A stretch of DNA of 64,000 bases, taken from NCBI GenBank assembly GCA_052327205.1, contig JBMRGM010000037.1, forward strand, positions 55,490,001 to 55,554,000, written 5' to 3'. Made by a program: the position numbers and the translations under genes. Shown here piece after piece: positions 1 through 63,620 of the stretch; the first letter of the stretch is position 1; each line of letters opens with the position of its first letter. The notes under the pieces were generated by a model that had not been told where the DNA came from, searched no databases, and was given only the letters and a program-made list of their open reading frames with translations. The DNA comes from Somniosus microcephalus. Its lineage: Eukaryota.

Positions 1-1465
1 GGGAAGGTGCCAGAGGACGGGAGGACAGCTAACGTAGTACCATTATTCAAGAAGGGTAGTAGGGATAAACCAGGGAATTACAGGCCAGTGAGCCTAACAT
101 CAGTGGTAGGGAAATTATTGGAAAGACTTCTGAGGGCCAGAATTAGTCTCCACTTGGAGAGGCAAGGATTAATCAAAGATAGTCAGCATGGCTTTGTCAG
201 GGGGAGATCATGTCTAACCAATTTGATTGAATTTTTTGAGGGGGTGATTAGGTGCGTGGATGACGGTAGTGCAGTTGATGTAGTCTACATGGATTTCAAT
301 AAGGCTTTTGACAAAGTCCCGCATGGGAGACTTGTCAAGAAGGTAAGAGCCCATGGGATCCAGGGCAATTTGGCACATTGGATCCAAAATTGGCTTAGTG
401 GCAGGAGGCAGAGGGTGATGGTCGAAGGTTGTTTTTGTGACTGGAAGCCTGTGTCCAGTGGTGTACCGCAGGTATCGGTGCTGGGTCCTTTGCTGTTTGT
501 AGTGTACATTAATGATTTAGATATGAACGTAGGCGGTATGATCGGTAAGTTCACAGATGACACGAAAATTGGTGAAGTGCTAAATAGCGAGGAGGGAAGC
601 CTCAGGCTGCAGGACGATATAGACGGGTTGGTCAGATGGACAGAACAGTGGCAAATGGAATTTAGCCCTGAAAAGTGTGAGGTGATGAATTTTGGGAGGA
701 CTAACAAGGCAAGGGAATACACAATGAATGGTAGGACCCTAGGAAGGACAGAGGATCAGAGGGACCTTGGTGTGCATGTACATAGATCACTGAAGGCAGT
801 AGGACAGGTAGATAAGGTGGTTAAAAAGGCATATGGGATACTTGCCTTCATTAGCCGAGGCATAGAATATAAGAGCAGGGAGGTTATGATGGAGCTGTAC
901 AAAATGCTAGTTAGGCCACAGCCGGAATACTGTGTGCAGTTCTGGTCGCCACACGATAGGAGGGATGTGATTGCTTTGGAGAGGGTGCAGAGGAGATTCA
1001 CCAGGGTGTTACCTGGGTTGGAGCGCTTCAGCTATGAAGAGAGACTGGACAGGCTGGGGTTGTTTTCCATGGAGCAGAGAAGGCTGAGGGGGGACCTGAT
1101 TGAGGTGTACAAAATTATGAGGGGCATAGATAGGGTAGATAAAGAGGAACTTTTCCCCTTAGCAGAGGGGTAAATAACCAGGGGGCATAGTTTCAAGGTA
1201 AGGGGCAGGAGGTTTAGAGGGGATTTGAGGGAAAACTTTTTCACCCAGAGGGTGGTTGGAATCTGGAAATCACTGCCTGAAAGGGTGGTAGAGGCAGGAA
1301 CCCTCACAACTTTCAAGAAGCATTTAGATGAGCACTCGAAACTCCATAGCATAAAAGGCTACGGACCAAGTGCTGGAAAATGGGATAAGAATAGATCGGG
1401 CTTGATGGCCGGCATGGACACGATGGGCCGAAGGGCCTCTTTCTGTGCTGTATAACTCTATGACT
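1..1465 (+). mobile_element. CR1-clade LINE, 3' part (RT domain and 3' end), runs off the window edge
   Basis: ORF 7..1173 has CR1 RT motifs (PGNYRPVSLTS, DFNKAFDKVPH, GVPQxSVLGP, FTDD) and a premature stop. The 3' tail is tataactctatgact. Confidence 0.93.
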
Positions 1466-1469
1466 GTAT

Positions 1470-4022: not shown

Positions 4023-4083
4023 GATGTTTTACAAATTTTGCTTCCTCAACCATTTGACCCATTTTAAATTCTGTTTTATTTAG

Positions 4084-4236
4084 GGAAACAAAAGAAATGC
4101 CCTGAAGTTTCCAAAGTGACCTTTCTTTGTAAGAAGAATTTCACCCAGTCTTGTGAGGATGATGATGATTGCAGTGCCCATAAACAGTGCTGCGACATTG
4201 GGTGTGGCAAAAAATGCGTCCACTCCTTCACACAAG
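4084..4236 (+). CDS. WAP-like exon 1 (xKQKKCPEVSKVTFLCKKNFTQSCEDDDDCSAHKQCCDIGCGKKCVHSFTQ)
   Basis: ttttatttag|GG ... CAAG|gtgagc, 153 bp, 8 Cys. Confidence 0.9.
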
Positions 4237-10200: not shown

Positions 10201-13200
10201 TATATTCCATTCAACCGATTGTTGGCTTTGCAGGAGGCAAACCTGGGGAGTGCTCACCCGCCAGCAGACTGAGATTTGTCTGCAATTCGACCATGGGGAA
10301 AGAGTGTGAGGGCGAGAGTAACTGTGGCAGATGGCAGACGTGCTGCTCAACTCCCTGTGGGGCACGGTGTGTCTTCAAGAGTTTCAGAGGAGGTGAGTAC
10401 AAATGTCTGAGCTTTACTCTCTATTTAACCCGTGCTGTACCTGCCCTGGGAGTGTTTGATGGGGGCAGTGTAGAGGGAGCTTTACTCTGTATCTAACCCG
10501 TGCTGTACCTGCCCTGGGAGTGTTTGATGGGGGCAGTGTAGAGGGAGCTTTACTCTGTATCTAACCCCGTGCTGTACCTGCCCTGGGAGTGTTAGTTGGG
10601 ACAGTGTAGAGGGAGCTTTACTCTGTATCTAACCCCGTGCTGTACCTGCCCTGGGAGTGTTTGATGGGACAGTGTAGAGGGAACTTTACTCTGTATCTAA
10701 CCCGTGCTGTACATGCCCTGGGAGTGTTTGATGGGGGCAGTGTAGAGGGAGCTTTACTCTGTATCTAACCCGTGCTGTACCTGCCCTGGGAGTGTTTGAT
10801 GGGGGCAGTGTAGAGGGAGCTTTACTCTGTATCTAACCCATGCTGCACCTGCACTGGGAGTGTTTGATGGGACAGTGTAGAGGGAGCTTTACCCTGTATC
10901 TAACCCATGCTGTACCTGCCCTGGGAGTGTTTGATGGGACAGTGTAGAGGGAGCTTTACTCTGTATCTAACCCCGTGCTGTACCTGCCCTGGGAGTGTTA
11001 GTTGGGACAGTGTAGAGGAATCTTTACTGTTTATCCAACCTATGTTGTGCTGTGTGTCTCTCTCTCTGGTGTAGAGGATGGGAGCTGTCCTCGCCCGGAT
11101 ATGCTGGCTCGTGTGTGTAACTCCACGTTCGGGAAGGTATGTGAGGCGGATGGAGACTGCGACGGTTCCCAAACCTGCTGTGACGCTGGCTGTCAGAAGC
11201 GATGTGTCCCATCCTTCTTCGGGAAGTTCCATGGAGGAAGCTCCTCAAATAAACCCAGCAAATCCTCGACAGGTTTGTTCAGGTCAGGGGGCGGGTTTCT
11301 CTATCTCCCTCTGTCTCTCCCTGTTTCTCCCTCTCTCACTCACTGTCATTGTCTCTCTGTCTCTCTTTCTGTCGCTCACACGCTCTCTATTTATCTATCG
11401 TCTGTCTCTCCCTCTCTCACCCTCCCTCTCTCTCACTGCCCCTCTCTCAGTGCCCCCCTCGCAATCCACCCCCTCACTCACCGCTCTCTCCCGCCTCACT
11501 CCCCCCTCACACTCACCGCTCACACTCCCCCGCCTCACACCCCCGCCTCACTCCCCCTCTCTCACTCCCCCTCTCTCACTTCCCCTCTCTCACTTCCCCC
11601 CCCTCTCACTCCCCCTCCTCACTCCCCCTCCCTGTCACTCCACCTCCTTCTCACTCCCCCTCTCTCACTCCCCCCTCTACCTCCCCCTCCCTCTCACTCC
11701 CCCTCCTCACTCCCCCTCCCTCTCACTCCCCCTCCCTCTCACTCCCTCTCCTCACTCCCCCTCCCTCACTCCCCCTCCCCCTCCTCACTCCCCCTCCCCC
11801 TCCTCACTCCCCCTCCCTGTCACTCCACCTCCTTCTCACTCCCCCCTCTCTCACTCCCCCTCCTCACTCCCCCTCCCCCTCCCTCTCTCTCTCTCCCTCT
11901 CTCTTTCTCCCTCTCCCTCTCTCACTCTCTCCCCCTGTTTCCTGTTACCACCCCTAACTCAATCTTTTGGTATCGCAGAATGGAATGCCAAGAAATGCCC
12001 CGATGTTTCCAGACTGGAGCGTGTGTGCAAGATGAATCACAGTGAGCCCTGCGAGGATGACGAGGATTGCGGGAAGTGGAAGCAGTGTTGTAAGACTTCC
12101 TGCGGCAACAGATGTGTCCACTCCTTCCTGGGCCATGGCCAGAGTGCGGCATTGTCAGGTAAAACCACGTGGCCAGTCTGCCCCGGCAGCCTGCGACAGA
12201 TAGGCCCCTTCCCCAGCAGCCTGGGACTGATAGGCCCATGCTCCCTGTAGCCTGGGACTGATAGGCCCCTGCTCCCTGTAGCCTGGGACTGATAGGCCCC
12301 TGCTCCCTGTAGCCTGGGACTGATAGGCCCCTGCTCCCAGCAGCTTGGGACTGATAGGCCCCTGCTCCCTGTAGCCTGGGACTGATAGGCCCCTGCTCCC
12401 TGTAGCCTGGGACTGATAGGCCCCTGCTCCCTGTAGCCTGGGACTGATAGGCCCCTGTTCCCTGTGTAATGATATCAGCAAATAGTGATGTTATTTGCCT
12501 GTTTGATTATCATGTCTTACCAGCATGTTTGCATGTATTGATTACTTATGCCTGACCAGCAGAGGTCATGTGAGAGACAAGCAGAGGAGTTTAGTTTCAG
12601 TTTCGTTCTAGATGCATCACTAGCAGGATGTCTCCTCTAAATGCTGTATAAAGAGTTGAACAAGCTTTAGATTATAACACATTCTCGTCATTGAACCCAC
12701 AAAGAAATCAATACATGGTGTCAGAAGTGATTGAAAGAGATGAAGAGAAAAAATCTGAAGATAAATCAACTCTCCACAAATTAGCAAGCCAAAAGAGAAC
12801 ATCGTTGCTTACCATTGGAGAATAGCTAACGAAGTGAAAAAATGGAAGGTTTACACCCACCGGCGACGCTTCAGTTGACAGGTAATGTGGCTGAAATTTG
12901 GAGGAGGTTCAAACAACGTGTGGGGTTGTATTTATCAGCAAAGAGATGCTAAAAAGGATCCATGGAGGACATCTGGGAATCAAAAAGTGTAAGAAAAGAG
13001 CACAAGAGGTGATGTACTGGCCACGAATCAACCAAGATGTGACAAATGAGGTCTCAAACTGCACAATATGCCTGAAATATCGAGCAAGCAATCCGGTAGA
13101 ACCACTAAAGCCACACCCAGCACCAGACAGACCTTACCAGAAGGTAGGCGCTGACCTATTCGTATGTCAAGGGAAGGACTATCTTGTAGTCACAGACTAT

Positions 13201-16200
13201 TACTCCCTGTAACCAGAGGTTTGTAGACTGCACATCACCACTGCAGATGCTGTGATAACATGTATGAAAGCCATATTCTCCAGACATGGCGTGGCAAGCG
13301 AGGTCTTCACAGACAACGGACCTCAGTTTTATAATGCAAGTTTCCGACACTTTGCCAAAGAGTGGGACTTTGTCCACACAACGTCAAGTCCTCACTTTCC
13401 ACAGTCCAATGGTCTAGTGGAAAAATCGGTCCAGACAGTGAAAAGACTGATGTACAAGGCAAAAGACAGTGGAACTGACTTCTACCAGAGTATGCTTGTA
13501 TACCGCACAACGCCGCTCGAGTGTGGTAAGTCACCAGCCCAACTCCTTATGGGACGTCGGCTAAGGTCAAACCTACCCATCCCGGAGAACCTCCTGAAAA
13601 CAAAAGAGGGGGAGAAAGTGAGGAAGTTCAAAGAACAACAGAAAGAAAAGCAAAAGTACTACTATGACAGAGGAACACAAAACCTACCTGAACTCCACAC
13701 TGGTGACCAAGTAAGGTTCAAAGACAAAACAAACACATGGACTCAGAAGGGAACTGTCCTGAGTGAAGTTCAACCAAGATCATACACCATTCAGACAGAT
13801 GAGGGTGCTGTTCTGAGAAGAAATCATCGAGATCTTCTCATGGGACCAGCCACAGCAGGTCAAGAGACTGATACTGTTGAACAACCTGATCACACAGCTG
13901 AGAACCAATCACCTGAGGCAACAACTCAGATTCAAGGACAATCAATCAGAAAATCCTCAAGACACGTGAAGCCTCCTGAGAGACTCATTGAGCAAATTTA
14001 AGGACTATTGTTATAGAAGGAAGTAATGTTATCTTATTCTTTCTTCAAGTTCTAGTGTAGTTACATATTTCATGTGAACACACAAAGCAAGGTTAAAAAA
14101 CTTTGATCATGATAATGATAATGTAAGTTCATTAAGTGTTACCGTTAAAATGCAGATTAATACAAAGAAAACATGTTGTTAGTTAAAAGTAAAATACTTT
14201 TGTTTTAAGAAAGGGAGATGTAATGATATCAGCAAATAGTGATGTTATTTGCCTGTTTGATTATCATGTCTTACCAGCATGTTTGCATGTATTGATTACT
14301 TATGCCTGACCAGCAGAGGTCATGTGAGAGACAAGCAGAGGAGTTTAGTTTCAGTTTTGTTCTAGATGCATCACTAGCAGGATGTCTCCTCTAAATGCTG
14401 TATAAAGAGTTGAACAAGCTTTAGATTAAAACACATTCTCTTTCATAAATGTCTCGTCATTGAACCCACAAAGAAATCAATACACCCTGTAGCCTGGGAC
14501 TGATAGGCCCCTGCTCCCTGTAGCCTGGGACTGATAGGCTCCTGCTCCCTGTAGCCTGAGACTGATAGGCCCCTGCTCCCTGTAGCCTGGGACTGATAGG
14601 CCCCTGCTCCCAGCACCCTGGGACTGATAGGCCCCTGCTCCCTGTAGCCTGGGACTGATAGGCCCCCTGCTCCCTGTAGCCTGGGACTGATAGGCCCCTG
14701 CTCCCAGCAGCCTGGGACTGATAGGCCCCTGCACCCTGTAGCCTGGGACTGATAGGCTCCTGCTCCCTGTAGCCTGGGACTGATAGGCTCCTGCTCCCTG
14801 TAGCCTGGGACTGATAGGCCCCTGCTCCCTGTAGCCTGGGACCGATAGGCCCCTGTAGCCTGGGACTGATAGGCCCTGCTCCCTGTAGCCTGGGACTGAT
14901 AGGCCCCTGCACCCTGTAGCCTGGGACTGATGGGCCCCTGCTCCCTGTAGCCTGGGACTGATAGGCCCCTGCTCCCTGTAGCCTGGGACTGATAGGCCCC
15001 TGCTCCCTGTAGCCTGGGACTGATAGGCTCCTGCTCCCTGTAGCCTGGCACTGATAGGCCCCTGCTCCCTGTAACCTGGGACTGATAGGCCTCTGCTCCC
15101 TGTAGCCTGGGACTGATAGGCCCCTGCTCCCTGTAGCCTGCGACTGATAGGGCCCTGCTCCCAGCAGCCTGGGACTGATAGGCCCCTGCTCCCTGTAGCC
15201 TGGGACTGATAGGCCCCTGCTCCCAGCAGCCTGGGACTGATAGGCCCCTGCTCCCAGCAGCCTGGGACTGATAGGCCCCTGCTCCCTGTAGCCTGGGACT
15301 GATAGGCCCCTGTAGCCTGGGACTGATACGCCCCTGCTCCCAGCAGCCTGGGACTGATAGGTGTTGTGTATGTACCTTTAAGGGAAGAACTGGTTTGAGA
15401 CTGCAGTACCGGCAGTGACCACCCCTGTTTAAAAGGCCCGAGCAGGCTTCTGTATTTCAGTCTGACGTTAGTTCTCCCGAAGTCCGTGTATTATTGAGGC
15501 GCGGACTTTACAGTGGCGACGAGTAAGTTCGAACTCACCTGCAGTGTGGCATCATCTCACGGGGATCTCACCCTGAGAGGAGGTTTCTTGGAGGTCATAG
15601 TCTGAGCAACGGGCGTTGACCGCGGGCAACTGCCCAAAGAATTCATCGGTGTTCCGAGAATTGCGGGAGAGGCTATGGAGAGCTATGCTTGGCTCCCCAG
15701 TTAAGGTGTTCCTGCAAATCATGCTGGTAGCAGGTAGTGCGCTGACCTTTCCGGACTGCGGCGGGCTCAAGCTCGATTGAGCGGCTCTACAAAACGGGCC
15801 GCGCAGCGTCGCCGGGGAAAGAAAACAAGAGAGAGAGGGTGGAGCGCACAGGGCGCGGTCGGTGCTCAAGAACCGGGCAGCGGAGAGAAAATAAACCGGG
15901 GAAGGAAAGCGAGACGCGCCGAAGCCGCGGGTCGCCGCCATTACCCTGTAGAATGCTAGGAGCAGCGTGGCAGCAAGGGGAAGAAGCAAAAGTGCGGGAG
16001 GCGCCATTTTATCCCATTGGGGAAGAAGGAAAAGCGCGGGAGGCGCCATTTTATTCCATTGGGGAAGAAGCAAAAGCGCGGGAGGCGCCATTTTAAATCA
16101 CCCAAGATGCCAAAAAGTGGCAGTATCACTGCTTTTGACAACGAGTTAGAAGACTGGACCACGTATGTGGAAAGAATTGAAGTGTACTGCAAGGCAAATG

Positions 16201-49200: not shown

Positions 49201-52200
49201 TAACCCGAGCTGTACCTGCCCTGGGAGTGTTTGCTGGGACAGTGTAGAGTGAGCTTTACTCTGTATCTAACCTGTGCTGTACCTGCCCTGGGAGTGTTTG
49301 ATGGGACAGTGTAGAGGGAGCTTTACTCTGTATCTAACCCGTGCTGTACCTGCCCTGGGAGTGTTTGATGGGACAGTGTAGAGGGAGCTTTACTCTGTAT
49401 CTAACCTGTGCTGTACCTGCCCTGGGAGTGTTTGCTGGGACAGTGTAGAGGGAGCTTTACTCTGTATCTAACCCGAGCTGTATCTGCCCTGGGAGTGTTT
49501 GATGGGACAGTGTAGAGGGAGCTTTACTCTGTATCTAACCCATGCTGTATCTGCCCTGGGAGTGTTTGATGGGACAGTGTAAAAGGAGATTTACTCTGTA
49601 TCTAACCCGAGCTGTACCTGCCCTGGGAGTGTTTGCTGGGACAGTGTAGAGGGAGCTTTACTCTGTATCTAACCCGTGCTGTACCTGCCCTGGGAGTGTT
49701 TGATGGGACAGTGTAGAGGGAGCTTTACTCTGTATCTAACCCGTGCTGTACCTGCCCTGGGAGTGTTTGATGGGACAGTGTAGAAGGAGCTTTACTCTGT
49801 ATTTAACCCGTGCTGTACCTGCCCTGGGAGTGTTTGATGGAACAGTGTAGAGGGAGCTTTACTCTGTATCTAACCCCGTGCTGTAGCTGCCCTGGGAGTG
49901 TTTGCTGGGACAGTGTAGAAGGAGCTTTACTCTGTATCTAACCCCGTGCTGTACCTGCCCTGGGAGTGTTTGATGGGACAGTGTAGAAGGAGCTTTACTC
50001 TGTATCTAACCCATGCTGTACCTGCCCTGGGAGTGTTTGCTGGGACAGTGTGGAGGGAGCTTTACTCTGTATCTAACCCATGCTGTATCTGCCCTGGGAG
50101 TGTTTGATGGGACAGTGTAGAAGGAGCTTTACTCTGTATCTAACCAGTGCTGTACCTGCCCTGGGAGTGTTTGATGGGACAGTGTAGAGGGAGCTTTACT
50201 CTGTATCTTACCCATGCTGTATCTGCCCTGGGAGTGTTTGCTGGGACAGTGTAGAGGGAGCTTTACTCTGTATCTAACCCGTGCTGTACCTGCCCTGGGA
50301 GTGTTTGATGGGACAGTGTAGAAGGAGCTTTACTCTGTATCTAACCCCGTGCTGTATCTGCCCTGGGAGTGTTTGCTGGGACAGTGTAGAGGGAGCTTCA
50401 CTCTGTGTCTAACCCATGCTGTACCTGCCCTGGGAGTGTTTGCTGGGACAGTGTAGAGGGAGCTTTACTCTGTATCTAACCCGTGCTGTACCTGCCCTGG
50501 GAGTGTTTGATGGGACAGTGTAGAGGGAGCTTTACTCTGTATCTAACCCGTGCTGTATCTGCCCTGGGAGTGTTTGCTGCGACAGTGTAGGGGGAGCTTT
50601 ACTCTGTATCTAACCCGAGCTGTATCTGCCCTGGGAGTGTTTGATGGGACAGTGTAGAAGGAGCTTTACTCTGTATCTAACCCGAGCTGTGTCTGCCCTG
50701 GGAGTGTTTGCTGGGACAGTGTAGAGGGAGCTTCACTCTGTGTCTAACCCATGCTGTACCTGCCCTGGGAGTGTTTGCTGGGACAGTGTAGAGGGAGCTT
50801 TACTCTGTATCTAACCCGAGCTGTATCTGCCCGGGGAGTGTTTGCTGGGACAGTGTAGAGGGAGCTTCACTCTGTGTCTAACCCATGCTGTACCTGCCCT
50901 GGGAGTGTTTGATGGGACAGTGTAGAGGGAGCTTTACTCTGTGTCTAACCTGTGCTGTATCTGCCCTGGGAGTGTTTGCTGGGACAGTGTAGAGGGAGCT
51001 TCACTCTGTGTCTAACCCGTGCTGTATCTGCCCTGGGAGTGTTTGCTGGGACAGTGTAGAGGGAGCTTTACTCTGTATCTAACCCGTGCTGTACCTGCCC
51101 TGGGAGTGTTTGCTGGGACAGTGTAGAAGGAGCTTTACTCTGTATCTAACCCGTGCTGTACCTGCCCTGGGAGTGTTTGATGGGACAGTGTAGAGGGAGC
51201 TTTACTCTGTATCTAACCCGTGCTGTACCTGCCCTGGGAGTGTTTGCTGGGACAGTGTAGAAGGAGCTTTACTCTGTATCTAACCCGTGCTGTACCTGCC
51301 CTGGGAGTGTTTGCTGGGACAGTGTAGAAGGAGCTTTACTCTGTATCTAACCCGTGCTGTACCTGCCCTGGGAGTGTTTGATGGGACAGTGTAGAAGCAG
51401 CTTTACTCTGTGTCTAACCCGTGCTGTATCTGCCCTGGGAGTGTTTGCTGTGACAGTGTAGAGGGAGCTTCACTCTGTGTCTAACCCACCCACCCCGCAG
51501 ACGTTGAATGGACCTTAAAACGAATCTGGTTCTGGTTGCCTTACAGAGAACAGCAGTTGCCCGGCTCCCAGTCGCCTTGGTCCCATGTGTGATGTAAACT
51601 ATGGAAAGGAGTGCGAGGATAATGACGATTGCGATCTTTGGTTGACGTGCTGTGATGCTGGCTGTGGGAAAAGATGTGTCCATCGAGCTTCCAGGCACAG
51701 TAAGAAGGACTGTCTTTCCTGGGAATCAGCAAGAGCCTCTGGGGGAGTTACTGTGTTCAGTTCTGGGTACTGAACCTCAGGAAGGATATTTTATCCTTGG
51801 AATGGGAGCAGCACAGATTCACCAGAATGATACCCGGGGTGTGCTAATAGGGCTAAACGTGGAGACTCCACCATTGATGGCCATGCCTTCCGGTGTCTAG
51901 GGCCCTAAGCTCTGGAAATCCCTCCATGTTCAGCTGCATTCGCAGCTCCTCAGATAATGAAGCAGTCCATGCCCGCATGCAGCAAGACCTGGATGATATT
52001 CAGGCTTGGGCGGATAAGTGGCAAGTTACATTCGCCAACACAAGTGCCAGAGATAAGAACATAAGAACATAAGAAATAGGAGCAGGAGAAGGCCAATCGG
52101 CCCCTCGAGCCTGCTCCGCCATTCAATAAGATCATGGCTGATCTGATCCTAACCGCCAATCCACCATCACTGAACCATCTCCTGAATCTAACAGAATTAG

Positions 52201-55200
52201 ACACACGAAATAGGAGCAGGGTCAGGCTAAACGGCCCCTGGGCCCGCTCCGCTACCCACAGGGCCATGGCCGATCCGAACCTAGACTCATGTCCAAATTC
52301 CTGCCCGCTCCCCGTAACCCTCAATTCCCTTTACTTCTAGGAAACTGTCTATTTCTGTTTTAAATTTATGTAATGATGTAGCTTCTACAGCTTTTTGGGG
52401 CAGCATAGTCCATGGACCTACCACCCTCTGAGTGAAGTAGTTCCTCCTCATCTCAGTTTTGAAAGAGCAGCCCCTTATTCTAAGACTATGCCCCCTAGTT
52501 CTAGTTTCACCCATCATCGGGAACATCCTCCCCGCATCCACCCGATCCAACCCCTTCACAATCTTATATGTTTCAATAAGATCGCCTCTCATTCTTCTGA
52601 ACTCCAATGAGTAGAGTCCCAATCTACTCAACCTCTCCTCATATGTCCATCCCCTCATCCCCGGGATTAACCGAGTGAACCTTCTTTGTACTGACTCGAG
52701 AGCAAATATGTCCTTTCTTAAGTATGGACACCAAAACTGTACGCAGTATTCCAGGTGCGGTCTCACCAATACCTTGTACAACTGAAGCAATACCTCCCTA
52801 TTTTTATATTCTATCCCCCTAGCAATGAAAGCAAACATTCCATTGGCCTTCTTAATCACCTGCTGCACCTGCATACTAACCTTTTGAGTTTCGTGCACCA
52901 GGACCCCCAGATCCCTTTGTACTTCAGTACTTTCCTGTTTCTTGCCATTAAGATAATAACTTGCTCTACGATTTTTCCTGCCAAAGTGCATAACCTCACA
53001 CTTTCCAGTATTGTATTCCATCTGCCAAATCTCTGCTCACTTACTTAGCCTGTCTATGTCCCCTTGCAGGTTTTTTATGTCCTCCTCACTCACTACTTTC
53101 CCTCCCATCTTAGTATCATCTGCAAACTTTGATATGTTACACTCGGTCCCCTCCTCCAAATCGTTAATATAGATTGTAAATACAAGAGACAGTCTAGCCA
53201 CCTCCCCTTGACATTTAACGGCATTACCATCGCCGAATCCCCCACCATCAACATGCTGGGGGTCACCATTGACCAGAAACTTAACTCTACCAGCCACATA
53301 AATGCTGCGGCCACAAGAGCAGGTCAGAGGCTGGGTATTCTGTGGTGAGTGTCTCACCTGCTGACTCCCCAAAGCCTTTCCACCATCTACAAGGCACAAG
53401 TCAGCAGTGTGATGGAATACTCTCCACTTGCCTGGATGAGTGCAGCTCCAACAACACTCAAGAAACTCGACACCATCCAGGACAAAACAGCCCGCTTGAT
53501 TGGCACCCCATCCACCACCTTAAACATTCACTCCCCCCACCACCGGCGCACCGAGGCTGCAGTGTGTACCATCTACAAGATGCACTGCAGCAACTCACCA
53601 AGGCTTCTTCGGCAACACCTCCCAAACCCGCGACCTCTTCCACCTAGAAGGACAAGGGCAGCAGGTGGATGGGAACACCATCACCTCCAAGTACTATGGG
53701 AGTACCTTCACCTCACAGACTGCAGCGGTTCAAGAAGGCAGCTCACCACCACCTTCTCAAGTGCGATTGTGGAAGGGACACTAAATGCTGGCCTTGCCAG
53801 CGACACCCACATCCCATGAGCGAATTTAAAAAGAACCTCTCCTCCTCTATCACACTCATTAAAAATGTACATCTTTGACCATGATAGACGTCATCCCCTG
53901 GGTGTTGACAATTGATGGGGGAGGGGGCGGGGTGTGGGCGCCGGGGAGGTGGAATTGCAGAGGTGAATGTCCAGAGGGGAGCAGATTCAGTAGTGGGGGA
54001 CGTTTAACTCCTACAGCAGCCCCGCATCCCCCCCATCCCTTGCCCGATTTCCCTCAATCCCTTCCATCCAGGAGTTACGCGAGACTCGGAGCTTCATGTC
54101 CATACTCTGCCCCTCTAGGTTTCTCAGAGTCCTTCGACACTCAGTCACTGATTTTAATACTCGTTGCGTTTATTTTTAAAAACAGAAATGAGAGACAGGA
54201 AATGTCCGGAACCTTCTACGACACAACACATCTGCGATAAGGCGCAGTCGGAGAAGTGCGAGACGGACGAGGATTGCGGAGGCTGGAAGCAGTGCTGTGA
54301 AGTCGGGGACTGTGGGAAACGATGTGTCTACACATACCACACGACCGGTGAGAACCACATGGGGAGAGTCCGCGAGAGAAGGGAGAGTCCGCGGGAGGGG
54401 GGGAGAGTCCGCGGGCGGGGGGAAGAGTCCGCGGGAGGGGGGGAGAGTCCGCGGGAGGGGGGGAGAGTCCGCGGGAGGGGGGGAGAGTCCGCGGGAGGGG
54501 GGGAGAGTCCGCGGGAGGGGGGGAGAGTCCGCGGGAGGGGGGGAGAGTCTCGTGCTGTACTTGCCCTGGGAGTGTTTGATTGAGCAGTGTCGAGGGATCT
54601 TTAATCTATATTTAATGTTTTACAAATTTTGCTTCCTCAACCATTTGAACCATTTTAAATTCTGTTTTATTTAGGGAAACAAAAGAAATGCCCTGAAGTT
54701 TCCAAAGTGACCTTTCTTTGTAAGAAGAATTTCACCCAGTCTTGTGAGAATGATGATGATTGCAGTGCCCATAAACAGTGCTGCGACATTGGGTGCGGCA
54801 AAAAATGCGTCTACTCCTTCACACAAGGTGAGCCCCAGCCCGAGGGAGGGGCAGCAGTGGGCAACTGGGGGAATCAGGTACCGGGCTCCTGGGATCAGAG
54901 TCTGATAGGCCCCAGGCTCCAGGGGTCAGAGTCTGATAGGCCCCAGGCCCCAGGGGTCAGTCTGATAGGCCCCAGGCTCCAGGGGTCAGAGTCTGATAGG
55001 CCACAGGCTCCTGGGATCAGAGTCTGATAGGCCCCAGGCTCCAGGGGTCAGAGTCTGATAGGCCCCAGGCTCCAGGGTTCAGAGTCTGATAGGCCCCAGG
55101 CTCCAGGGGTCAGAGTCTGCTAGGCCCCAGGCTCCAGGGGTCAGAGTCTGATAGGCCCCAGGCTCCAGGGTTCAGAGTCTGATAGTCCCCAGGCTCCAGG

Positions 55201-58200: not shown

Positions 58201-61200
58201 ACCCCTTATTCTGAGACTGTGACCCCTGGTTCTAGACTCCCCAGCCAGGGGAAACATCCTCCCTGCATCTACCCTGTCAAGCCCTGTAAGAATTTTGTAT
58301 GTTTCAATGAGATCACCTCTCATTCTTCTAAACTCTAGAGAATATAGGCCTGGTCTACTCAATCTGTTCTCATAGGACAATCCCCCCCATCCCAGGAACC
58401 AGTCTGTGAACCTTCGTTGCACTCCCTCTATGGTAAGTATATCCTTCCTTAGGTAAGGAGACCAAAACTGTCCACAATACTCCAGGTGTGCTCTCACCAA
58501 GGCCCTATATAATTGCAGTAAGACGTCTTTACTCTTATACTCAAATCCTCCTGTAATAAAGGCCAACATACCATTGGTTTTCCTAATTGCTTGCTGTACC
58601 TGCATGTTAACGTTCAGTGATTCGTGTACAAGGACACCCAGGTCCCTCTGAACACCAACATTTCCCAATCTCTCACCATTTAAAAAATACACTGCTTTTC
58701 TATTTTTCCATAACTTCACATTTCTCCACATTATATTCCATTCAACCGATTGTTGGCTTTGCAGGAGTCAAACCTGGGGAGTGCTCACCCGCCAGCAGAC
58801 TGAGATTTGTCTGCAATTCGACCATGGGGAAAGAGTGTGAGGGCGAGAGTAACTGTGGCAGATGGCAGACGTGCTGCTCAACTCCCTGTGGGGCACGGTG
58901 TGTCTTCAAGAGTTTCAGAGGAGGTGAGTACAAATGTCTGAGCTTTACTCTCTATTTAACCCGTGCTGTACCTGCCCTGGGAGTGTTTGATGGGGGCAGT
59001 GTAGAGGGAGCTTTACTCTGTATATAACACGTGCTGTACCTGCCCTGGGAGTGTTTGATGGGACAGTGCAGAGGGAGCTTTACTCTGTATCTAACCCGTG
59101 CTGTACCTGCCCTGGGAGTGTTTGATGGGACAGTGTAGAGGGAGCTTTACTCTGTATCGAACCTGTGCTGTACCTGCCCTGGGAGTGTTTGATGGGACAG
59201 TGTCGAGGGAGCTTTACTCTGTATCTAACCCCGTGATGTACCTGCCCTGGGAGTGTTTGATGGGACAGTGTAGTGGGAGCTTTACTCTGTATCTAACCCG
59301 TGCTGTACCTGCCCTGGGAGTGTTAGTTGGGACAGTGTAGAGGGAGCATTACTCTGTATCTAACCCATGCTGTACCTGCCCTGGGAGTGTTTGATGGGAC
59401 AGTGTAGAAGGAGCTTTACTCTGTATCTAACCCGTGCTGTACCTGCCCTGGGAGTGTTAGTTGGGACAGTGTAGAGGGAGCTTTACTCTATATCTAACCC
59501 CATGCTGTACCTGCCCTGGGAGTGTTAGTTGGGACAGTGTAGTGGAATCTTTGCTGTGTATCTAACCTATGTTGTGCTGTGTGTCTCTCTCTCTGGTGCA
59601 GAGGATGGGAGCTGTCCTCGCCCAGATATGCTGGCTCGTGTGTGTAACTCCACGTTCGGGAAGGTATGTGAGGCGGATGGAGACTGCGACGGTTCCCAAA
59701 CCTGCTGTGACGCTGGCTGTCAGAAGCGATGTGTCCCATCCTTCTTCGGGAAGTTCCATGGAGGAAGCTCCTCACATAAACCCAGCAAATCCTCGACAGG
59801 TTTGTTCAGGTCTGGGGGCGGGTTTCTCCATCTCTCTCTGTCTCTCCCTCTCTCTCTCACTGTCATTGTCTCTCTCTGTGTCTCTTTCTGTCCCTCACAC
59901 GCTCTCTATCTATCTATCGTCTGTCTCTCCCTCTCTCACACTCCCTCTCTCTCACTCCCACCCTCTCACTCCCCCTCTCTCACTCCCACCCTCTCACTCC
60001 CCCTCTCTCACTCGCACCCTCTCACTCCCCCTCCCTCTCACTCCCTCTCACTCCCCCTCGCCCCTCCCCCTCGCCTCTCACTCTCTCCCCCTGATTCCTG
60101 TTACCACCCCTAACTCAATCTTTTGGTATCGCAGAGTGGAATGCCAAGAAATGCCCCGATGTTTCCAGACTGGAGCGTGTGTGCAAGATGAATCACAGTG
60201 AGCCCTGCGAGGATGACGAGGATTGTGGGAAGTGGAAGCAGTGTTGTAAGACTTCCTGTGGCAACAGATGTGTCCACTCCTTCCTGGGCCATGGCCAGAG
60301 TGCGGCATTGTCAGGTAAAACCACGTGGCCAGTCTGCCCCGGCAGCCTGCGACAGATAGGCCCCTTCCCCAGCAGCCTTGGACTGATAGGCCCCTGCTCC
60401 CTGTAGCCTGGGACTGATAGGCCCCTGCTCCCTGTAGCCTGGGACTGATAGGCCCCTGCTCCCTGTAGCCTGGGACTGATAGGCCCCTGCTCCCTGTAGC
60501 CTGGGACTGATAGGCCCCTGCTCCCTGTAGCCTGGGACTGATAGGCCCCTGCTCCCAGCAGCTTGGGACTGATAGGCCCCTGCTCCCTGTAGCCTGGGAC
60601 TGATAGGCCCCTGCTCCCTGTAGCCTGGGACTGATGGGCCCCTGCTCCCTGTAGCCTGGGACTGATGGGCCCCTGCTCCCTGTAGCCTGGGACTGATAGT
60701 CCCCTGCTCCCTGTAGCCTGGGACTGATAGTCCCCTGCTCCCTGTAGCCTGGGACTGATAGGCCCCTGCTCCCTGTAGCCTGGGACTGATAGTCCCCTGC
60801 TCCCTGTAGCCTGGGACTGATAGTCCCCTGCTCCCTGTAGCCTGGGACTGATAGGCCCCTGCTCCCTGTAGCCTGGGACTGATGGGCCCCTGCTCCCTGT
60901 AGCCTGGGACTGATGGGCCCCTGCTCCCTGTAGCCTGGGACTGATAGGCCCCTGCTCCCTGTAGCCTGGGATTGATAGGCCCCTGCTCCCTGTAGCCTGG
61001 GACTTATAACTCTCTGGTCTTGGGGGCTAAAAGGATTAAATTATGTGGACAGACTGGGCTTGTGTTCCCTCGACTATAGAAGATTAAGGGATAAACTAAT
61101 TGAGCCGTTTAGATTTATAATCTTGCAGATTGTGTGTGGAATTGTCAAATTAATTTCAATACAGATAAGTGTGAGGTGGTACATTGTGGTAGGAAGAATA

Positions 61201-63620
61201 ATTAGGCCACATACTGCTTGGAGAATAAGAGTCTAAATGGGGATTTACAGGAGCAGAGGGATCTGGGGGTTCAGATACACAATTCACTAAAAGTAGCGAC
61301 ACAGGTTAATCTGGCCATAAAAAAGCAAACAAAGCACTGGGGTTCATTTCCCGAGGGATTGAATTGAAAAACAGAGAAGTTACGTTAAACTTGTATAAAC
61401 CCTTAGTTTGGCCACACTTCAGAAAGTACTTCATTGGCTGTGAAGCGCTTTGGGATGTCCTGAGGTGGTGAAAGGCGTTGTATGGTAACAGGCTTGAGAG
61501 TGGGTGCTGAATGGGCCCACTCCTGTTCCTATGGTAACGGGCTCGAGGGGCTGCATGGGCCTACTTCTCTTCCTATGGTAACACGCTCGGAGCGGGTGGG
61601 TGGGTGCTGAACGGGCCCACTCCTGTCCCCAAGTTGCTTAGCATGCCAGAGGTGTGATGTGCTCAGATCCTCAATCCCACCCATTCCCGAGCTCTGCCTC
61701 TCCTTTCTCCAGATCAGACGGCCGGTGAGTGCCCCACCCCAGGGCGCCTCTCCATGATGTGCGAGCTGAAGTTTGCGGAGCTGTGCGAGGACGACGACGA
61801 TTGCTACGCCTGGCAGACCTGCTGCAACACCACCTGCGGCAGGCGATGTGTCCATTCGTTCCACAGCAATGGTAAGCTAACCAATCGGGTCTTTGCCCCA
61901 TCACCCGGTGATGGAGGGTGGAGAGGGGGTCAGGAGAGGCGGGGGTGGGGGTGGGGAGCTAACCAATCGGGTCTTTGCCCCATCACCCGGTGATGGAGAG
62001 TGGAGAGGGGGTCAGGAGAGGTGGGGGTGGGGAGCTAACCAATCGCGTCTTTGCCCCATCACCCGGTGATGGAGAGTGGAGAGGGGGTCGGGAGAGGTGG
62101 GAATGGGGGTGGGGAGCTAACCAATCGGGTCTTTGCCCCATCACCCGGTGATGGAGGGTGGAGAGTGGGCCGGGAGAGGCGGGGGGTGGAGGTGGGAAGC
62201 TAACCAATCGGGTCTTTGCCCCATCACCCGGTGATGGAGGGTGGAGAGGGGGTCAGGAGAGGTGGGGGTGGGGAGCGAGCTCCAGATTAGAGGCATCGAA
62301 CCGAACTGTGTATCACTGCCCACATCGGGCACTGTGACCTGTTATCCTCTGGTACCAAAGGTCCAATCCAGATTCAGAGGAGAGGGAGGGCACCAGTCTG
62401 TCTGATATAAGAACACAGGAACATAAGAATTAGGAGCAGGAGTCGGCCATTCGGCCCCTGCAGTCTGCACTGCCATTCAATAAGATCATGGCTGATCTTC
62501 TACCTCATCTCCACTTTCCCCCACTATCCCCATATCCCTTGATTCACATCGTGTCCAAAAATCTATCGATCTCGGTCTTGAATATCCTCAACGACTGAGC
62601 CTCCACAGCCCTCTGGGGTAGAGAAATCCAAAGATTCACCTCCCTCTGAGTGAAGAAACTTCTCCTCATCTCAGTCCTAAATGGCCGACCCCTAAACCTG
62701 AGACTGTGACCCCTGGTTCTATACACTGCAGCCAGGGGAAACAGCTACTCGGTATCTACCCTGTCAAGCCCTCTGAGACATTTATACATTTCAATGAGAT
62801 CACCTCTCATTCTTCTAAACTCCAGGGAGTATCGGCCCAATCTACTCAATCTCTCTTCATAGGACAACCCTCTCACCCCAGGAATCAATCTAGTGAACCA
62901 TCGCTGCGCCCCGTCCAAGGCAAGTATATCCTTCATCGGGTAAGGAGACCAAACTGACGGGGGCAGTGGGTCAGGCACCGTGACCTCTCACCCACTGGGT
63001 ACCTCGGGTCAAACCCCTGTGCCTAAGGAGACGGAGGGCACCTCCCTGTCTGACGGGGGCAGTGGGTCAGGCAGCGTGACCTCTCATCCACTGGGTACCT
63101 CGGGTCAAAACACAGTGCCTAAGGAGATGGAAGGCACCTCTCTGTCTGACGGGGGCAGTGGGTCAGGCACCGTGACCTCTCACCCATTGGGTACCTCGGG
63201 TCAAACCCCAGTGCCTAAGGAGATGGAGGGCACCTCCCTGTCTGACGGGGGCAGTGGGTCAGGCAGCCTGACCTCTCACCCACTGGGTACCTCGGGTCAA
63301 ACCCCAGTGCCTAAGGAGATGGAGGGCACCTCCCTGTCTGACGGGGGCAGTGGGTCAGGCACTGTAGACCTGACCAAGCCCCCGGTGCCCACCTTCAGCC
63401 TCAGCCCAGTCAAGCAGCGATCAATGGCTGGAGGGAAGCAATAACCAATCCGCTCTTTCTACAGGGCATGAACGAAGATGCCCGGAATCTTCCAGACTGA
63501 CTCACATCTGCACGATGAGCTTCAACACCCAGTGCAACAACGACAGCAGCTGTGAGGGTTGGCAGACTTGTTGCGATGCCAGCTGTGGAAACAGATGTGT
63601 ACCTAAGTTCCTCACCAGAG
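4084..63620 (+). CDS. Multi-exon gene (partial, 18 internal coding exons) encoding a giant tandem WAP/four-disulfide-core (WFDC-like) domain protein
   Basis: 18 exons, each preceded by a pyrimidine-rich tract + AG and followed by GT. All lengths are multiples of 3, all are phase 1-1, and there are no stops within exons or at junction codons. Each encodes C-X9-C-X7-C-X5-C-X5-CC-X3/4-C-X3-C, matching the WAP 8-Cys pattern. No start or stop exon was found in the window. Confidence 0.85.
4295..6936. repeat. 31-bp minisatellite (ggccccaggctccaggggtcagagtctgata)
   Basis: Tandem periodicity starting just after the exon 1 donor. Confidence 0.95.
6937..9225. repeat. 19-bp G-rich minisatellite (ggggtgggctaggagtgat / ggggtgagctaggagtgat)
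   Basis: Tandem 19-mer with homogeneous sub-blocks of variants; strong G-skew. Confidence 0.95.
9405..10210 (-). mobile_element. CR1 LINE 3' fragment (antisense)
   Basis: Minus-strand translation RDLGVLVH...ALVRPHLEYC...RRMRGDLIETYK. Confidence 0.9.
10234..10392 (+). CDS. WAP-like exon 2 (GGKPGECSPASRLRFVCNSTMGKECEGESNCGRWQTCCSTPCGARCVFKSFRG)
   Basis: ctttgcag|GA ... GGAG|gtgagt, 159 bp, canonical WAP KPGxC start. Confidence 0.92.
10408..11040. repeat. 67-bp satellite, ~9 copies (fills intron 2)
   Basis: Same unit as 1470-4022. Confidence 0.93.
11075..11272 (+). CDS. WAP-like exon 3 (EDGSCPRPDMLARVCNSTFGKVCEADGDCDGSQTCCDAGCQKRCVPSFFGKFHGGSSSNKPSKSST)
   Basis: ctctggtgtag|AG ... ACAG|gtttgt, 198 bp. 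The donor is weaker than the others but in phase and conserved in the duplicate exon 15. Ser/Gly-rich linker tail. Confidence 0.82.
11300..11935. repeat. Polypyrimidine low-complexity tract (ctcactcccc-type)
   Basis: Almost purely C/T with a recurrent ctcactcccc motif; fills intron 3. Confidence 0.9.
11979..12158 (+). CDS. WAP-like exon 4 (EWNAKKCPDVSRLERVCKMNHSEPCEDDEDCGKWKQCCKTSCGNRCVHSFLGHGQSAALS)
   Basis: tatcgcag|AA ... TCAG|gtaaaa, 180 bp. Confidence 0.9.
12465..14484 (+). mobile_element. Internally deleted Gypsy LTR retrotransposon (LTRs 12465-12715 and 14219-14484; gag start fused to integrase)
   Basis: TG...CA LTRs, 5-bp TSD ccctg, PBS tggtgtcagaagtg (tRNA-Leu-like) and PPT aagaaagggaga. 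Integrase HHCC (H-GHLG...CTIC) and DDE core (TDNGPQF, QSNGLVE). No protease, RT or RNaseH. Confidence 0.92.
15362..22798 (+). mobile_element. Full-length but decayed Gypsy (Mag-like) LTR retrotransposon (LTRs 15362-15512 and 22617-22798)
   Basis: 5-bp TSD atagg, PBS tggcgacgag (tRNA-Ser-like), PPT aaaagggaaggaa. Gag from ~16107 has two CCHC knuckles. Protease LDTGS, RT YLDD, RNaseH CDAS, integrase (HIDFAGPF, TNGLAERF). Multiple stops and frameshifts. Confidence 0.95.
18853..21295 (-). mobile_element. 5'-truncated CR1 LINE nested in Gypsy pol
   Basis: Minus-strand ORF2 pieces 19869-21295 and 19158-19835. The Gypsy pol frame (…TVKG | WPAYGDS…) resumes exactly on the other side. Confidence 0.93.
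24415..24890 (+). mobile_element. Degenerate CR1 fragments followed by the 3' end of a Deu-domain SINE
   Basis: Decayed CR1-like segments (agggatctgggggttcagatacac). The segment cacttcagaaagtacttcattggctgtgaagcgctttgggatgtcctgagg resembles, from memory, the DeuSINE 3' region. Confidence 0.6.
25117..25275 (+). CDS. WAP-like exon 5 (DQTAGECPAPGRLSMMCELKFAELCEDDDDCYAWQTCCNTTCGRRCVHSSHSN)
   Basis: cctttctccag|AT ... AATG|gtaagc, 159 bp. Confidence 0.92.
25279..25940. repeat. 82-bp tandem repeat (agctaaccaatcgggtctttgccccatcacccggtgatggag...), ~8 copies
   Basis: 82-bp period starting within the exon 5 donor region. Confidence 0.92.
26070..26612 (-). mobile_element. CR1 LINE 3' fragment (antisense)
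   Basis: Minus-strand WSPY...RRMRGDLIEMYK. Confidence 0.88.
26613..27118. repeat. 96-bp tandem repeat, ~5 copies
   Basis: tgacgggggcagtgggtcaggc recurs every 96 bp. Confidence 0.92.
27219..27374 (+). CDS. WAP-like exon 6 (GHERRCPESSRLTHICTMSFNTQCNNDSSCEGWQTCCDASCGNRCVPKFLTR)
   Basis: ctttctacag|GA ... AGAG|gtaaga, 156 bp. Confidence 0.92.
27382..28477 (-). mobile_element. Probable solo LTR (ERV/LTR-element type), antisense
   Basis: AT-rich 1.1-kb block with inverted termini tgaagggata ... tattccttca and flanks taagag/caagag (TSD-like). Minus-strand TATAAA at 28015-28020 and AATAAA at 27726-27731. Confidence 0.65.
28492..28612. repeat. Two degenerate 67-bp satellite units
   Basis: tttactctgtatctaacc...gtgtttgatggg. 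Confidence 0.8.
28667..28816 (+). CDS. WAP-like exon 7 (ATQCPSSSRLDSFCEMKLGDVCESDADCLAWSSCCDADCGKRCVPRFFMA)
   Basis: tatcttccag|CG ... GCCA|gtgagt, 150 bp. Confidence 0.9.
28999..29590. repeat. Compound (GT)n microsatellite with an inserted LINE 3' end
   Basis: (gt)n / gtatctgagt tracts on both sides of 29227-29458. Confidence 0.9.
29227..29458 (+). mobile_element. Heavily 5'-truncated copy of the non-LTR element at 30854-32364
   Basis: ctatgttacagcttgccat.aacagagggacaacca...gccaataaagcgatttg is shared with 32141-32347; (ttgta)n tail. Confidence 0.85.
29706..30385. repeat. 30-bp minisatellite (gagggagaccctcgatttaggggcggtccc)
   Basis: 30-bp periodicity upstream of exon 8. Confidence 0.92.
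30470..30622 (+). CDS. WAP-like exon 8 (KDDTCPAPHRLAPMCDLKLGDQCKGDKDCDVWQTCCDSKCGKICIASFTDN)
   Basis: gggttccag|AG ... AATG|gtaaga, 153 bp. Confidence 0.9.
30683..30853. other. Assembly gap (171 N)
   Basis: Run of n. Confidence 0.99.
30854..32364 (+). mobile_element. Non-LTR retrotransposon 3' half (RT C-terminus + CxxC..HF..C finger; clade uncertain, possibly RTE-X-like)
   Basis: ORF 30885..32180: LLCADDLVLL (YADD variant), YTYLG, HSLAIEKGR...RICSHC...ETEMHFLTAC. AATAAA then a (ttgaa)n tail. Confidence 0.88.
32395..35320 (+). mobile_element. CR1 LINE ORF2 (endonuclease + RT), decayed
   Basis: ITETW, YRPPN, GDFN, SDH, DFQKAFDKVPH and FADD motifs across frameshifted ORFs; ttctatgtttcta tail. 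Confidence 0.93.
35325..35640 (-). mobile_element. Deu-domain SINE remnant (SacSINE1/AmnSINE1-like), antisense
   Basis: The reverse complement reads gtactgagggagtgctgcactgt...gagacgttaagccgaggccccg...gatgtaaaagattcc...aggggagttctccc...attgctgtttgtggg...tttcctacattac...gtgactacacttcaaaa. This matches the DeuSINE consensus as recalled; no search was run. Confidence 0.75.
35603..40350. repeat. 33-bp satellite (cagtacagcacctccgacagtgcagcactccct), ~140 copies
   Basis: 33-bp period; explains the ~1000-aa repetitive ORFs on both strands. Confidence 0.96.
40408..40560 (+). CDS. WAP-like exon 9 (DEDDECPNSYRARHICSKNSSKACSSDEDCSSWMQCCDVGCGKRCVYSSSY)
   Basis: ttcttgcag|AT ... TACA|gtaagg, 153 bp. Confidence 0.9.
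40675..41890. repeat. ~30-bp minisatellite (ctgtgtctgataggcccaggctccaggctc)
   Basis: Tandem periodicity downstream of exon 9. Confidence 0.93.
42370..43725 (-). mobile_element. Old antisense CR1 fragment with an internal ~99-bp segment amplified ~10x (42623-43555)
   Basis: The repeat unit translates on the minus strand as RFTRMVPGMRDFSYMERLEKLGLFSLEQRRLRG (CR1 ORF2 C-terminal region). It is flanked by further CR1 sequence. Confidence 0.88.
43752..43907 (+). CDS. WAP-like exon 10 (KKSQQCPTTSTLSKVCTMKLGDECEGDGDCDSWQMCCDAGCGKRCVFKSFKG)
   Basis: tcttcctttacaag|AA ... GGAG|gtgagg, 156 bp. The acceptor is AAG, less common than YAG, so the 5' boundary is slightly uncertain. Confidence 0.83.
43908..44534. 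repeat. ~25-bp minisatellite (gtgaggagtccccgcagtttgtggg) beginning at the exon 10 donor
   Basis: 25-bp period, ~25 copies. Confidence 0.92.
44535..47754 (-). mobile_element. Young, near-complete CR1 LINE (ORF1 SGNH-esterase C-terminus + ORF2 EN-RT)
   Basis: 817-aa ORF 44685..47138 is in frame with 47166..47480 across one stop. ORF1 fragment contains DGLHLN. Nearly identical to the CR1 at 18853-21295. Confidence 0.95.
47765..51487. repeat. 67-bp satellite, ~55 copies
   Basis: Same unit as 1470-4022. Confidence 0.95.
51547..51699 (+). CDS. WAP-like exon 11 (ENSSCPAPSRLGPMCDVNYGKECEDNDDCDLWLTCCDAGCGKRCVHRASRH)
   Basis: gccttacag|AG ... CACA|gtaaga, 153 bp. Confidence 0.9.
51945..53832 (+). 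mobile_element. Older + strand CR1-group LINE 3' part interrupted by an antisense CR1
   Basis: QQDLDDIQAWADKWQVTF at ~51980 continues at ~53183 (LGVTIDQKL..., YKAQVSSVMEYSPLAW). Confidence 0.8.
52055..53182 (-). mobile_element. CR1 LINE 3' part (antisense), nested
   Basis: ORF 52287..53021 and the FADDTK motif; taagaacataagaaca tail. Confidence 0.9.
54186..54347 (+). CDS. WAP-like exon 12 (KMRDRKCPEPSTTQHICDKAQSEKCETDEDCGGWKQCCEVGDCGKRCVYTYHTT)
   Basis: tttttaaaaacag|AA ... ACCG|gtgaga, 162 bp; CC-X4-C variant. Confidence 0.88.
54360..54548. repeat. 20-bp G-rich minisatellite (gggagagtccgcgggagggg)
   Basis: Tandem 20-mer after the exon 12 donor. Confidence 0.9.
54675..54827 (+). CDS. WAP-like exon 13 (duplicate of exon 1)
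   Basis: Same splice sites. 3 substitutions vs exon 1 (D>N, H>Y, one synonymous). Confidence 0.9.
58765..58923 (+). CDS. WAP-like exon 14 (duplicate of exon 2)
   Basis: ctttgcag|GA ... GGAG|gtgagt; G>V change. Confidence 0.9.
59602..59799 (+). CDS. WAP-like exon 15 (duplicate of exon 3)
   Basis: ggtgcag|AG ... ACAG|gtttgt; N>H plus one synonymous change. Confidence 0.82.
60135..60314 (+). CDS. WAP-like exon 16 (duplicate of exon 4)
   Basis: tatcgcag|AG ... TCAG|gtaaaa; three synonymous changes only. Confidence 0.9.
61713..61871 (+). CDS. WAP-like exon 17 (duplicate of exon 5)
   Basis: cctttctccag|AT ... AATG|gtaagc; A>T, S>F, one synonymous. Confidence 0.9.
63465..63620 (+). CDS. WAP-like exon 18 (duplicate of exon 6)
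   Basis: ctttctacag|GG ... AGAG|gtaaga; one synonymous change. Confidence 0.9.

Follow-up and report, generated by a model that had tools for sequence, protein, structure and literature searches.

What kind of gene is read across a 64,000-nucleotide stretch of the genome of the shark Somniosus microcephalus (assembly GCA_052327205.1, contig JBMRGM010000037.1, positions 55,490,001 to 55,554,000 of the forward strand; hereafter, the window), in which exons for small eight-cysteine domains of the WAP family recur? The best explanation overall, and one held to be very probable, is that the window lies within a single, very large plus-strand gene for a poly-WAP protein of sharks, of which it covers an internal part with one and a half units of a repeated exon series. 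The product would be a secreted chain of WAP domains, one for each phase-1 exon, in which a super-repeat of 12 domain types and ~644 aa is arranged in tandem.

A six-frame scan of the window for the 8-Cys WAP pattern gave 18 matches, all of them on the plus strand and none on the minus strand, and it reproduced the spacing given in an earlier note on this DNA, C-X9-C-X7-C-X5-C-X5-CC-X3-C-X3-C, with X4 in exon 12 only. The eight Cys columns are invariant in the 18 exons, including the CC doublet and the spacing characteristic of WAP domains, in which the disulfides connect C1-C6, C2-C7, C3-C5 and C4-C8. The assignment to this family, also made in that note, was confirmed with Pfam PF00095, which all 18 translations pass with 26.4-36.6 bits (cut-off 20.8). 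A profile made from these exons recovered the same 18 from the six-frame translation of the window (70.8-84.0 bits, the next best match reaching 7.8 bits), which indicates that the window holds neither decayed copies nor extra WAP exons. As had been claimed, the domains lie one per exon in a single open frame: each exon follows an AG acceptor with a pyrimidine tract, ends at a GT donor (GTRAG in 14 of the 18) and has phase 1-1 borders, and the linkers between domains measure ~10 residues. The total of 2937 nt given earlier is obtained with the upstream acceptors at 10234, 40408, 54186 and 58765, which have the better CAG context and the best fit to the protein of the sawshark Pristiophorus japonicus, whereas the nearest acceptors give 2916 nt; since no exon ends in T, the split codons cannot be stops. 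An Rfam scan of the window found no family.

The first unit opens with exon 1 (4084..4236, type 1, AG/GT borders in phase 1-1), with 33.8 bits in Pfam and 94% identity to the Pristiophorus type 1 domain. It is followed by exon 2 (10234..10392, type 2, 27.1 bits), whose alternative acceptor at 10237 has a poorer context and fits Pristiophorus less well, by exon 3 (11075..11272, type 3, 31.4 bits), with a long linker, the donor GTTTGT and 95% identity to Pristiophorus over 61 of 65 residues, and by exon 4 (11979..12158, type 4, 30.1 bits, AG/GT). Beyond intron 4 (12159..25116) come exon 5 (25117..25275, type 5, 36.6 bits), exon 6 (27219..27374, type 6, 35.9 bits, 96% identity to Pristiophorus), exon 7 (28667..28816, type 7, 28.1 bits) and exon 8 (30470..30622, type 8, 30.0 bits), with the donor ATG|GTAAGA. 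Exon 9 (40408..40560, type 9, 35.5 bits) has an alternative acceptor at 40414, and exon 10 (43752..43907, type 10, 34.6 bits) ends at a donor that is also the first copy of a 25-mer array (43907-44539, found with Tandem Repeats Finder, TRF). The unit closes with exon 11 (51547..51699, type 11, 26.4 bits), 94-96% identical to its counterparts in Pristiophorus and Scyliorhinus, and with exon 12 (54186..54347, type 12, 29.9 bits), the CC-X4-C variant, which carries a VGDC insertion and has an alternative acceptor at 54195. After intron 12 (54348..54674), a junction of only 327 nt between unit n and unit n+1 that consists mostly of a 20-mer array, the series begins again: exon 13 (54675..54827, type 1, 35.7 bits) has 3 differences in 153 nt with respect to exon 1, and exons 14 (58765..58923, type 2, 27.1 bits), 15 (59602..59799, type 3, 31.4 bits), 16 (60135..60314, type 4, 30.1 bits), 17 (61713..61871, type 5, 36.3 bits) and 18 (63465..63620, type 6, 35.9 bits) are copies of exons 2, 3, 4, 5 and 6, respectively.

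This repetition, a point missing from the earlier note, amounts to 13 differences in 1002 nt between exons 13-18 and exons 1-6 (98.7% identity), of which, in full codons, 5 are synonymous and 5 non-synonymous. Exons 13-18 are thus a second copy of exons 1-6, and the window comprises 1.5 units of a 12-exon super-repeat, one unit of which spans ~50.6 kb of DNA, with 1932 nt (644 aa) of exon and 12 domain types. Near-identical units are hard to assemble, and the locus is rich in minisatellites and has a gap, so that exons 13-18 might be taken for an artefact of the assembly (a haplotype copy, or a repeat joined wrongly). This possibility is considered highly improbable. Aligned over 1452 columns, the 120-nt intron flanks show 81 differences between the units (5.6%), the minisatellites are of unequal length, and intron 4 measures 12,958 nt in unit 1 but 1,398 nt in unit 2 (60315-61712), all of which argues for true paralogous units and not for a single locus assembled twice. 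Moreover, the junction from type 12 to type 1 contains an intact intron, the order of the domains is that of Pristiophorus, and tandem units are present in every shark model examined. The exons are better conserved between the two units than their intron flanks (Fisher p = 1.1e-8). At the upstream border of exons 1 and 13, the homology between the units begins only ~120 nt before each exon.

The window exons were searched against protein collections singly or as an alignment of the separate exons. Their profile, compared with 1.84 billion representative proteins, gave 301 matches at E ≤ 0.001, of which 13 reached E ≤ 1e-30, and the three top matches (913-2777 bits) are all from sharks: XP_038629981 of Scyliorhinus canicula comes first (2573 aa, 48 matched stretches, 2777 bits), followed by XP_041038369 of Carcharodon carcharias and XP_067836445 of Heptranchias perlo. 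Other models come from S. torazame (XP_072333680, 6215 aa, and XP_072333681, 3273 aa), P. japonicus (2412 aa and 6200 aa, the latter UPI00398F2792), Heterodontus francisci (XP_067882662/3, 2568 aa), Chiloscyllium punctatum (XP_072423558, up to 3410 aa) and Hemiscyllium ocellatum. In the four shark models scanned with Pfam, which included 5′ pieces and tail-bearing pieces, WAP is the only family above the cut-off. The window exons show 75-96% identity per domain to Pristiophorus, the closest among the compared species, and 44-96% to the best domains of the other seven shark proteins, and no compared shark protein has domains identical to those of the window. The word-indexed searches, and the 20 best clusters looked up among the 301 profile matches, gave no protein from a ray, skate or chimaera, a result which does not show their absence.

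When the domains of the shark models were typed by their best BLAST match to the 12 window exons, the 6200-aa model of Pristiophorus read A4xx, then eight runs of 123456789ABC and a final half-WAP, with 101 WAP domains in total. Its unit of ~642 aa contains the same 12 types in the same order as the window (1-12, then 1-6); the type 12-to-type 1 junction of the window is also found in the Pristiophorus proteins, and at most of the window exon junctions the alignment leaves a gap of one residue, as expected for a split codon. In Scyliorhinus, Heterodontus, Chiloscyllium, Hemiscyllium and Heptranchias the unit has 16 types, four extra ones being placed between 12 and 1, and the orthologous models as a whole carry 44-117 WAP domains. 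In Pristiophorus, four leader domains stand ahead of the first type 1 and occur once only, at the 5′ end, and XP_038629985 of S. canicula has a signal peptide followed by four domains that are typed like these leaders; signal-peptide-like N-termini are present on 5′ pieces from S. canicula, C. carcharias and H. francisci. At the 3′ end, a half-WAP is followed by an acidic stretch, which is Tyr-rich in Heterodontus and Scyliorhinus; Heterodontus and Pristiophorus then have a basic tail of repetitive sequence. In the Scyliorhinus 3′ pieces, XP_072333681 included, the last unit closes with type 12 repeated 9-12 times in a row, after which come the half-WAP and the acidic tail; neither Pristiophorus nor Heterodontus shows this local tandem expansion.

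The 6200-aa Pristiophorus model is close to complete. Many of the large models start with a Met inside a WAP domain or run into intron sequence, which marks them as pieces of something larger. In S. torazame, XP_072333680 has a type 8 domain as its last and continues into sequence that resembles an intron, and XP_072333681 begins at type 9; if both belong to one gene, it would have at least 178 domains. Judged by the 44-117 domains of the orthologous models, the gene is larger than the earlier note had guessed. On the side of the gene ends, that note was right in placing neither of them in the window: a tblastn search of the window with the signal-peptide and tail peptides of the other sharks found no homologue. 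A hand-made scan for signal-peptide-like first exons, itself a weak test, returned four overlapping candidates at two places, one of them inside a retroelement open reading frame (ORF).

A different reading of the same exons would make them several small tandem WFDC-like genes, or else an array that is silent or in decay. In mammals, WFDC loci consist of clustered small genes, and RefSeq splits the S. canicula locus into at least six models (XP_038629979-85, the LOC119951020 group). The split catshark models begin inside WAP domains, however, which identifies them as truncated pieces, and a set of small genes fits poorly with an intron 12 of only 327 nt and with a window that lacks any homologue of the known ends. 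As for decay, 18 of 18 exons are intact and keep every Cys, and they are more conserved than the introns. The sequencing runs gave no RNA evidence. The region 51500-54900 is matched by 24 sequencing runs, none of them recorded as RNA, and in the four that were compared with the window the depth is 0 on exons 11, 12 and 13, with no joints at the exon borders; this is uninformative as to expression and is not evidence of silence. Their contigs cover only 51728-53893, which is the repeat of intron 11 and accounts for the match of these runs to the region, and 54464-54691, in the 20-mer region of intron 12. For S. canicula, the 3′ piece has nine isoforms, and in the NCBI pipeline multiple isoforms usually reflect transcript evidence. 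Taken together, the small-gene and silent-array readings are given very little probability.

Several facts weigh against one large poly-WAP gene, the zero depth just described being the first of them. The models from other sharks are automatic predictions in fragments, some of which begin within a WAP domain. One, the 6200-aa model of Pristiophorus, carries an unrelated N-terminus: residues 1 to ~590, ahead of its first WAP domain, show no signal peptide and look Rap-GAP-like by eye, so that the prediction probably fuses an upstream gene to the poly-WAP gene. Another concern is the assembly gap of 171 N inside intron 8 (30683..30853), which could hide whole units, in which case exons 1-8 and 9-12 might come from different units. 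The gap starts 60 nt past the exon 8 donor and an ORF for the reverse transcriptase (RT) of a long interspersed nuclear element (LINE) begins 32 nt beyond it, which places it within the intron; since all exons are phase 1-1, it raises no question of frame, and since type 8 stands directly before type 9 in the shark models holding both, the gap is not expected to contain any domain type. The break between the two S. torazame models falls at this same intron. Moreover, no type 12 exon was found in the up to 4 kb of window that precede exon 1 (1-4083), whereas exon 13 has one 327 nt upstream. Either the unit of exon 1 is the one that directly follows the leader domains, or its own intron 12 has been expanded by a 67-mer array and a LINE.

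The last of these facts concerns the fold. A model of exon 1 obtained with AlphaFold2 (AF2) from an 18-row alignment has a mean predicted local distance difference test (pLDDT) score of 75, and a Foldseek search of the PDB with it returned no match at E ≤ 0.001. The sub-threshold Foldseek rows include omwaprin, half-SLPI, nawaprin and elafin, and VIA-align, with all Z scores below 5, placed half-SLPI (4doq_B) first with a weak Z of 3.5 over 36 residues at 2.0 Å, omwaprin third and nawaprin sixth (Z 2.7). The best matches of the model are thus WAP structures, at weak scores. Such weak structural scores are expected for a domain of ~50 residues. By sequence, the profile matched only anosmin-1 in the PDB (E = 0.0018), and a single exon matched SLPI, omwaprin and elafin at E 0.09-0.4, together with one spurious ribosomal protein.

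How such a chain has been maintained can be judged from a tree built with 138 different domain sequences, taken from the window and from six further shark species. Eight of the 12 domain types form exact clades, with Shimodaira-Hasegawa-like approximate likelihood ratio test (SH-aLRT) values of 89-99 and members from most or all of the seven species, and the other four are nearly clades, with F scores of 0.80-0.95; the type labels derive from BLAST to the window exons, and the clade support is independent of them. From one shark order to another, each type retains loop sequences and N-glycosylation sequons of its own, and the VGDC insertion of type 12 is kept in 7 of the 7 other shark species compared. 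The C2-C3 loop, which is the part least alike between types (16% identity), shows 76% identity between orthologues, on par with the rest of the domain, in a comparison of 75 of 84 possible pairs, those below 60% identity having been dropped. Within a species, by comparison, the units are almost the same: 99.3% identical in S. torazame (at a shift of 851 aa) and 99.0% in C. punctatum (842 aa). Old module types in young, homogenised units point to concerted evolution or to repeated re-amplification. As far as sequence comparison goes, this pattern indicates that each module type would have been under purifying selection while the units were homogenised or re-amplified.

The scale of this architecture is best appreciated next to other WAP proteins. 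Research on these has dealt with small factors of innate immunity and reproduction that have 1-4 domains. Mammalian WFDC proteins (SLPI, elafin/trappin-2, WFDC2, WFDC3 and WFDC8) resemble the shark protein in that they belong to the same Pfam family, have the 8-Cys pattern, are secreted and are encoded with one WAP domain per exon, but they contain one to four domains, a figure taken from the earlier note, against the ~100 of the shark protein. Tandem WAP arrays in secreted chains like that of sharks are known or predicted elsewhere. The profile matches include a ‘papilin-like’ model of the clingfish Gouania (32 matched stretches) and models from frogs (13-16), a hemichordate (20) and a starfish (16), as well as limpet and lamprey models and the 5-WAP ‘chorionic proteinase inhibitor’ of a dace, a cyprinid. 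Trichuris proteins with up to 15 WAP domains are reported in PMC9778506. All these other multi-WAP proteins reach at most 355 bits with the shark profile, against 913-2777 for the three top sharks, and their domain numbers are 3-20 times smaller; the comparison is one of scores and domain numbers, and the 12-type super-repeat was searched for in sharks only.

As to the novelty of the locus, the earlier note's main inference, a massive, lineage-specific expansion, is right, with caveats. Close relatives with 44-117 domains were seen in sharks in every case, but chains of 15-32 WAP domains are predicted or reported in other animals, so a multi-WAP architecture as such is not new; what is new is the scale and the conserved super-repeat of 12 or 16 types. 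The suggestion that the protein was probably undescribed likewise holds for the literature, where searches, supplementary tables not being covered, turned up no publication on a WAP or poly-WAP protein of sharks, and fails for the databases, since orthologues are already predicted in RefSeq/UniRef for at least nine shark species. The gene can hardly be called hidden from annotation, as had been proposed: eukaryotic pipelines already carry it, though in pieces and under wrong names (mua-3-like, MEGF6/11, jagged-1-like, fibrillin-2-like or extracellular matrix protein A-like), and these public predictions lower that claim. Such split and misnamed annotations will mislead studies of orthology and expression.

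With nearly even confidence, though not quite, we would propose that sharks possess a lineage-specific giant extracellular protein of ~100-180 WAP domains, in which a super-repeat of 12 types (ancestrally 16) has kept its order since before the living orders split and has been homogenised in each species, and which would be a new multivalent polymer of matrix or barrier with a function not seen in other vertebrates. If so, it would be among the larger secreted proteins of vertebrates and, to our knowledge, the largest WAP protein known. An array of ~100 conserved domains, with 12 orthologous module types under concerted evolution, places WAP architecture on a different scale, offers a clean natural case of super-repeat amplification and homogenisation, and implies an extracellular material or defence system of sharks that has gone unstudied.

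What the chain does is a further question, on which only tentative answers can be given. The favoured answer, itself doubtful, is a glycosylated, beads-on-a-string scaffold that would be held in the extracellular matrix or in a secretion by its charged tail, and that would present its 12 type-specific, conserved loops many times over, thereby binding or inhibiting extracellular proteases or microbes in a multivalent manner. The inhibitor part of this proposal meets three difficulties in the domains themselves. The window has C1-X9-C2-X7-C3 where the second domain of SLPI has C1-X6-C2-X8-C3, and Cys2 cannot be aligned to SLPI in HMMER, so that no P1 residue can be assigned; several types have an N-glycosylation sequon within the binding loop around Cys2; and most window domains are not cationic but acidic or neutral. 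Membership among the canonical inhibitors of the SLPI/elafin type is unsupported, as the loop lengths differ and no P1-P1′ pair is assignable.

The same gene could instead make a mainly structural product, a disulfide-rich, glycosylated polymer of mucus, of egg envelope or jelly, or of some other shark material, with the copies serving for mass and cross-linking. The extreme length, the near-identical units, the short linkers, the conserved sequons, the acidic Tyr-rich and then basic tails, and a loop geometry unlike that of SLPI would all suit such a polymer, and titles and occurrence counts in the literature point to WAP-repeat proteins in the shell matrices of barnacles and molluscs. Bulk material would not, however, be expected to keep twelve loop types, each across shark orders, which points to specific binding surfaces. 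The domains of gel-forming mucins (VWD/C8/TIL, cystine-knot, and Pro/Thr/Ser-rich) are also missing, none of them passing Pfam in the four shark models scanned. A mainly structural role is accordingly rated as rather unlikely.

Still less probable is a polyprotein precursor, whose linkers would be cut to release WAP peptides of a single or a few domains. In types 1, 4, 6 and 12 the first Cys is indeed immediately preceded by dibasic residues (KQKK-C, AKK-C, ERR-C and RK-C), which other sharks largely retain, and the cyprinid chorionic inhibitor is among the profile matches. But such sites occur in only four of the 12 linkers, and no clear furin motif (R-X-K/R-R) is present. Multi-domain inhibitor precursors that are cut into pieces are exemplified by LEKTI and by the dace chorionic WAP inhibitor. 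LEKTI (SPINK5), with 15 Kazal domains in one secreted chain processed by furin, offers an analogy only, since its many small, disulfide-rich, inhibitor-type domains belong to the Kazal family and not to WAP. Set beside the polyprotein and the structural polymer, the multivalent scaffold is the proposal that we would carry forward for the shark chain.

The introns of the locus are dominated by repeats. Many of them start with a minisatellite 0-60 nt past the donor, as TRF shows at 43907-44539, 25279-25937, 54361-54549, 4293-6937 and 12188-12465. The unit of the 25-mer array at the exon 10 donor contains GGTGAGG, which results in ~25 tandem donor-like sites. Introns 1, 4 and 9 have related 30- and 31-mers with a common CTGATAGGCC; a 67-mer repeat precedes exon 1 and recurs in introns 2 and 10. 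Half of intron 8 is a 33-mer minisatellite of ~144 copies (35606-40350), which gives rise to spurious ORFs longer than 1000 aa on the plus and the minus strand.

Transposable elements account for other parts. Intron 4 of unit 1, with its 31-mer minisatellites, contains ORFs of a long terminal repeat (LTR) retroelement identified with Pfam: a zinc knuckle (zf-CCHC) with an aspartyl protease (16577-17227), an RT (RVT_1) with RNase H (17388-18368) and an integrase (rve; 21488-22507), together with an integrase fragment (13252-14001) and, among the LTR ORFs, a minus-strand LINE RT ORF (19869-21425). Further LINE sequences are an RT ORF at the window start (7-1173, plus strand), the RT fragment after the N gap (30885-32180, plus strand) and an endonuclease plus RT ORF of 817 aa in intron 10 (44685-47138, minus strand). 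Finally, the middle of intron 11 (51728-53893) is an interspersed repeat, matched at 90-99% by thousands of contigs in three of the four sequencing runs and by 565 in the fourth, which come from at least three organisms and a fish metagenome.

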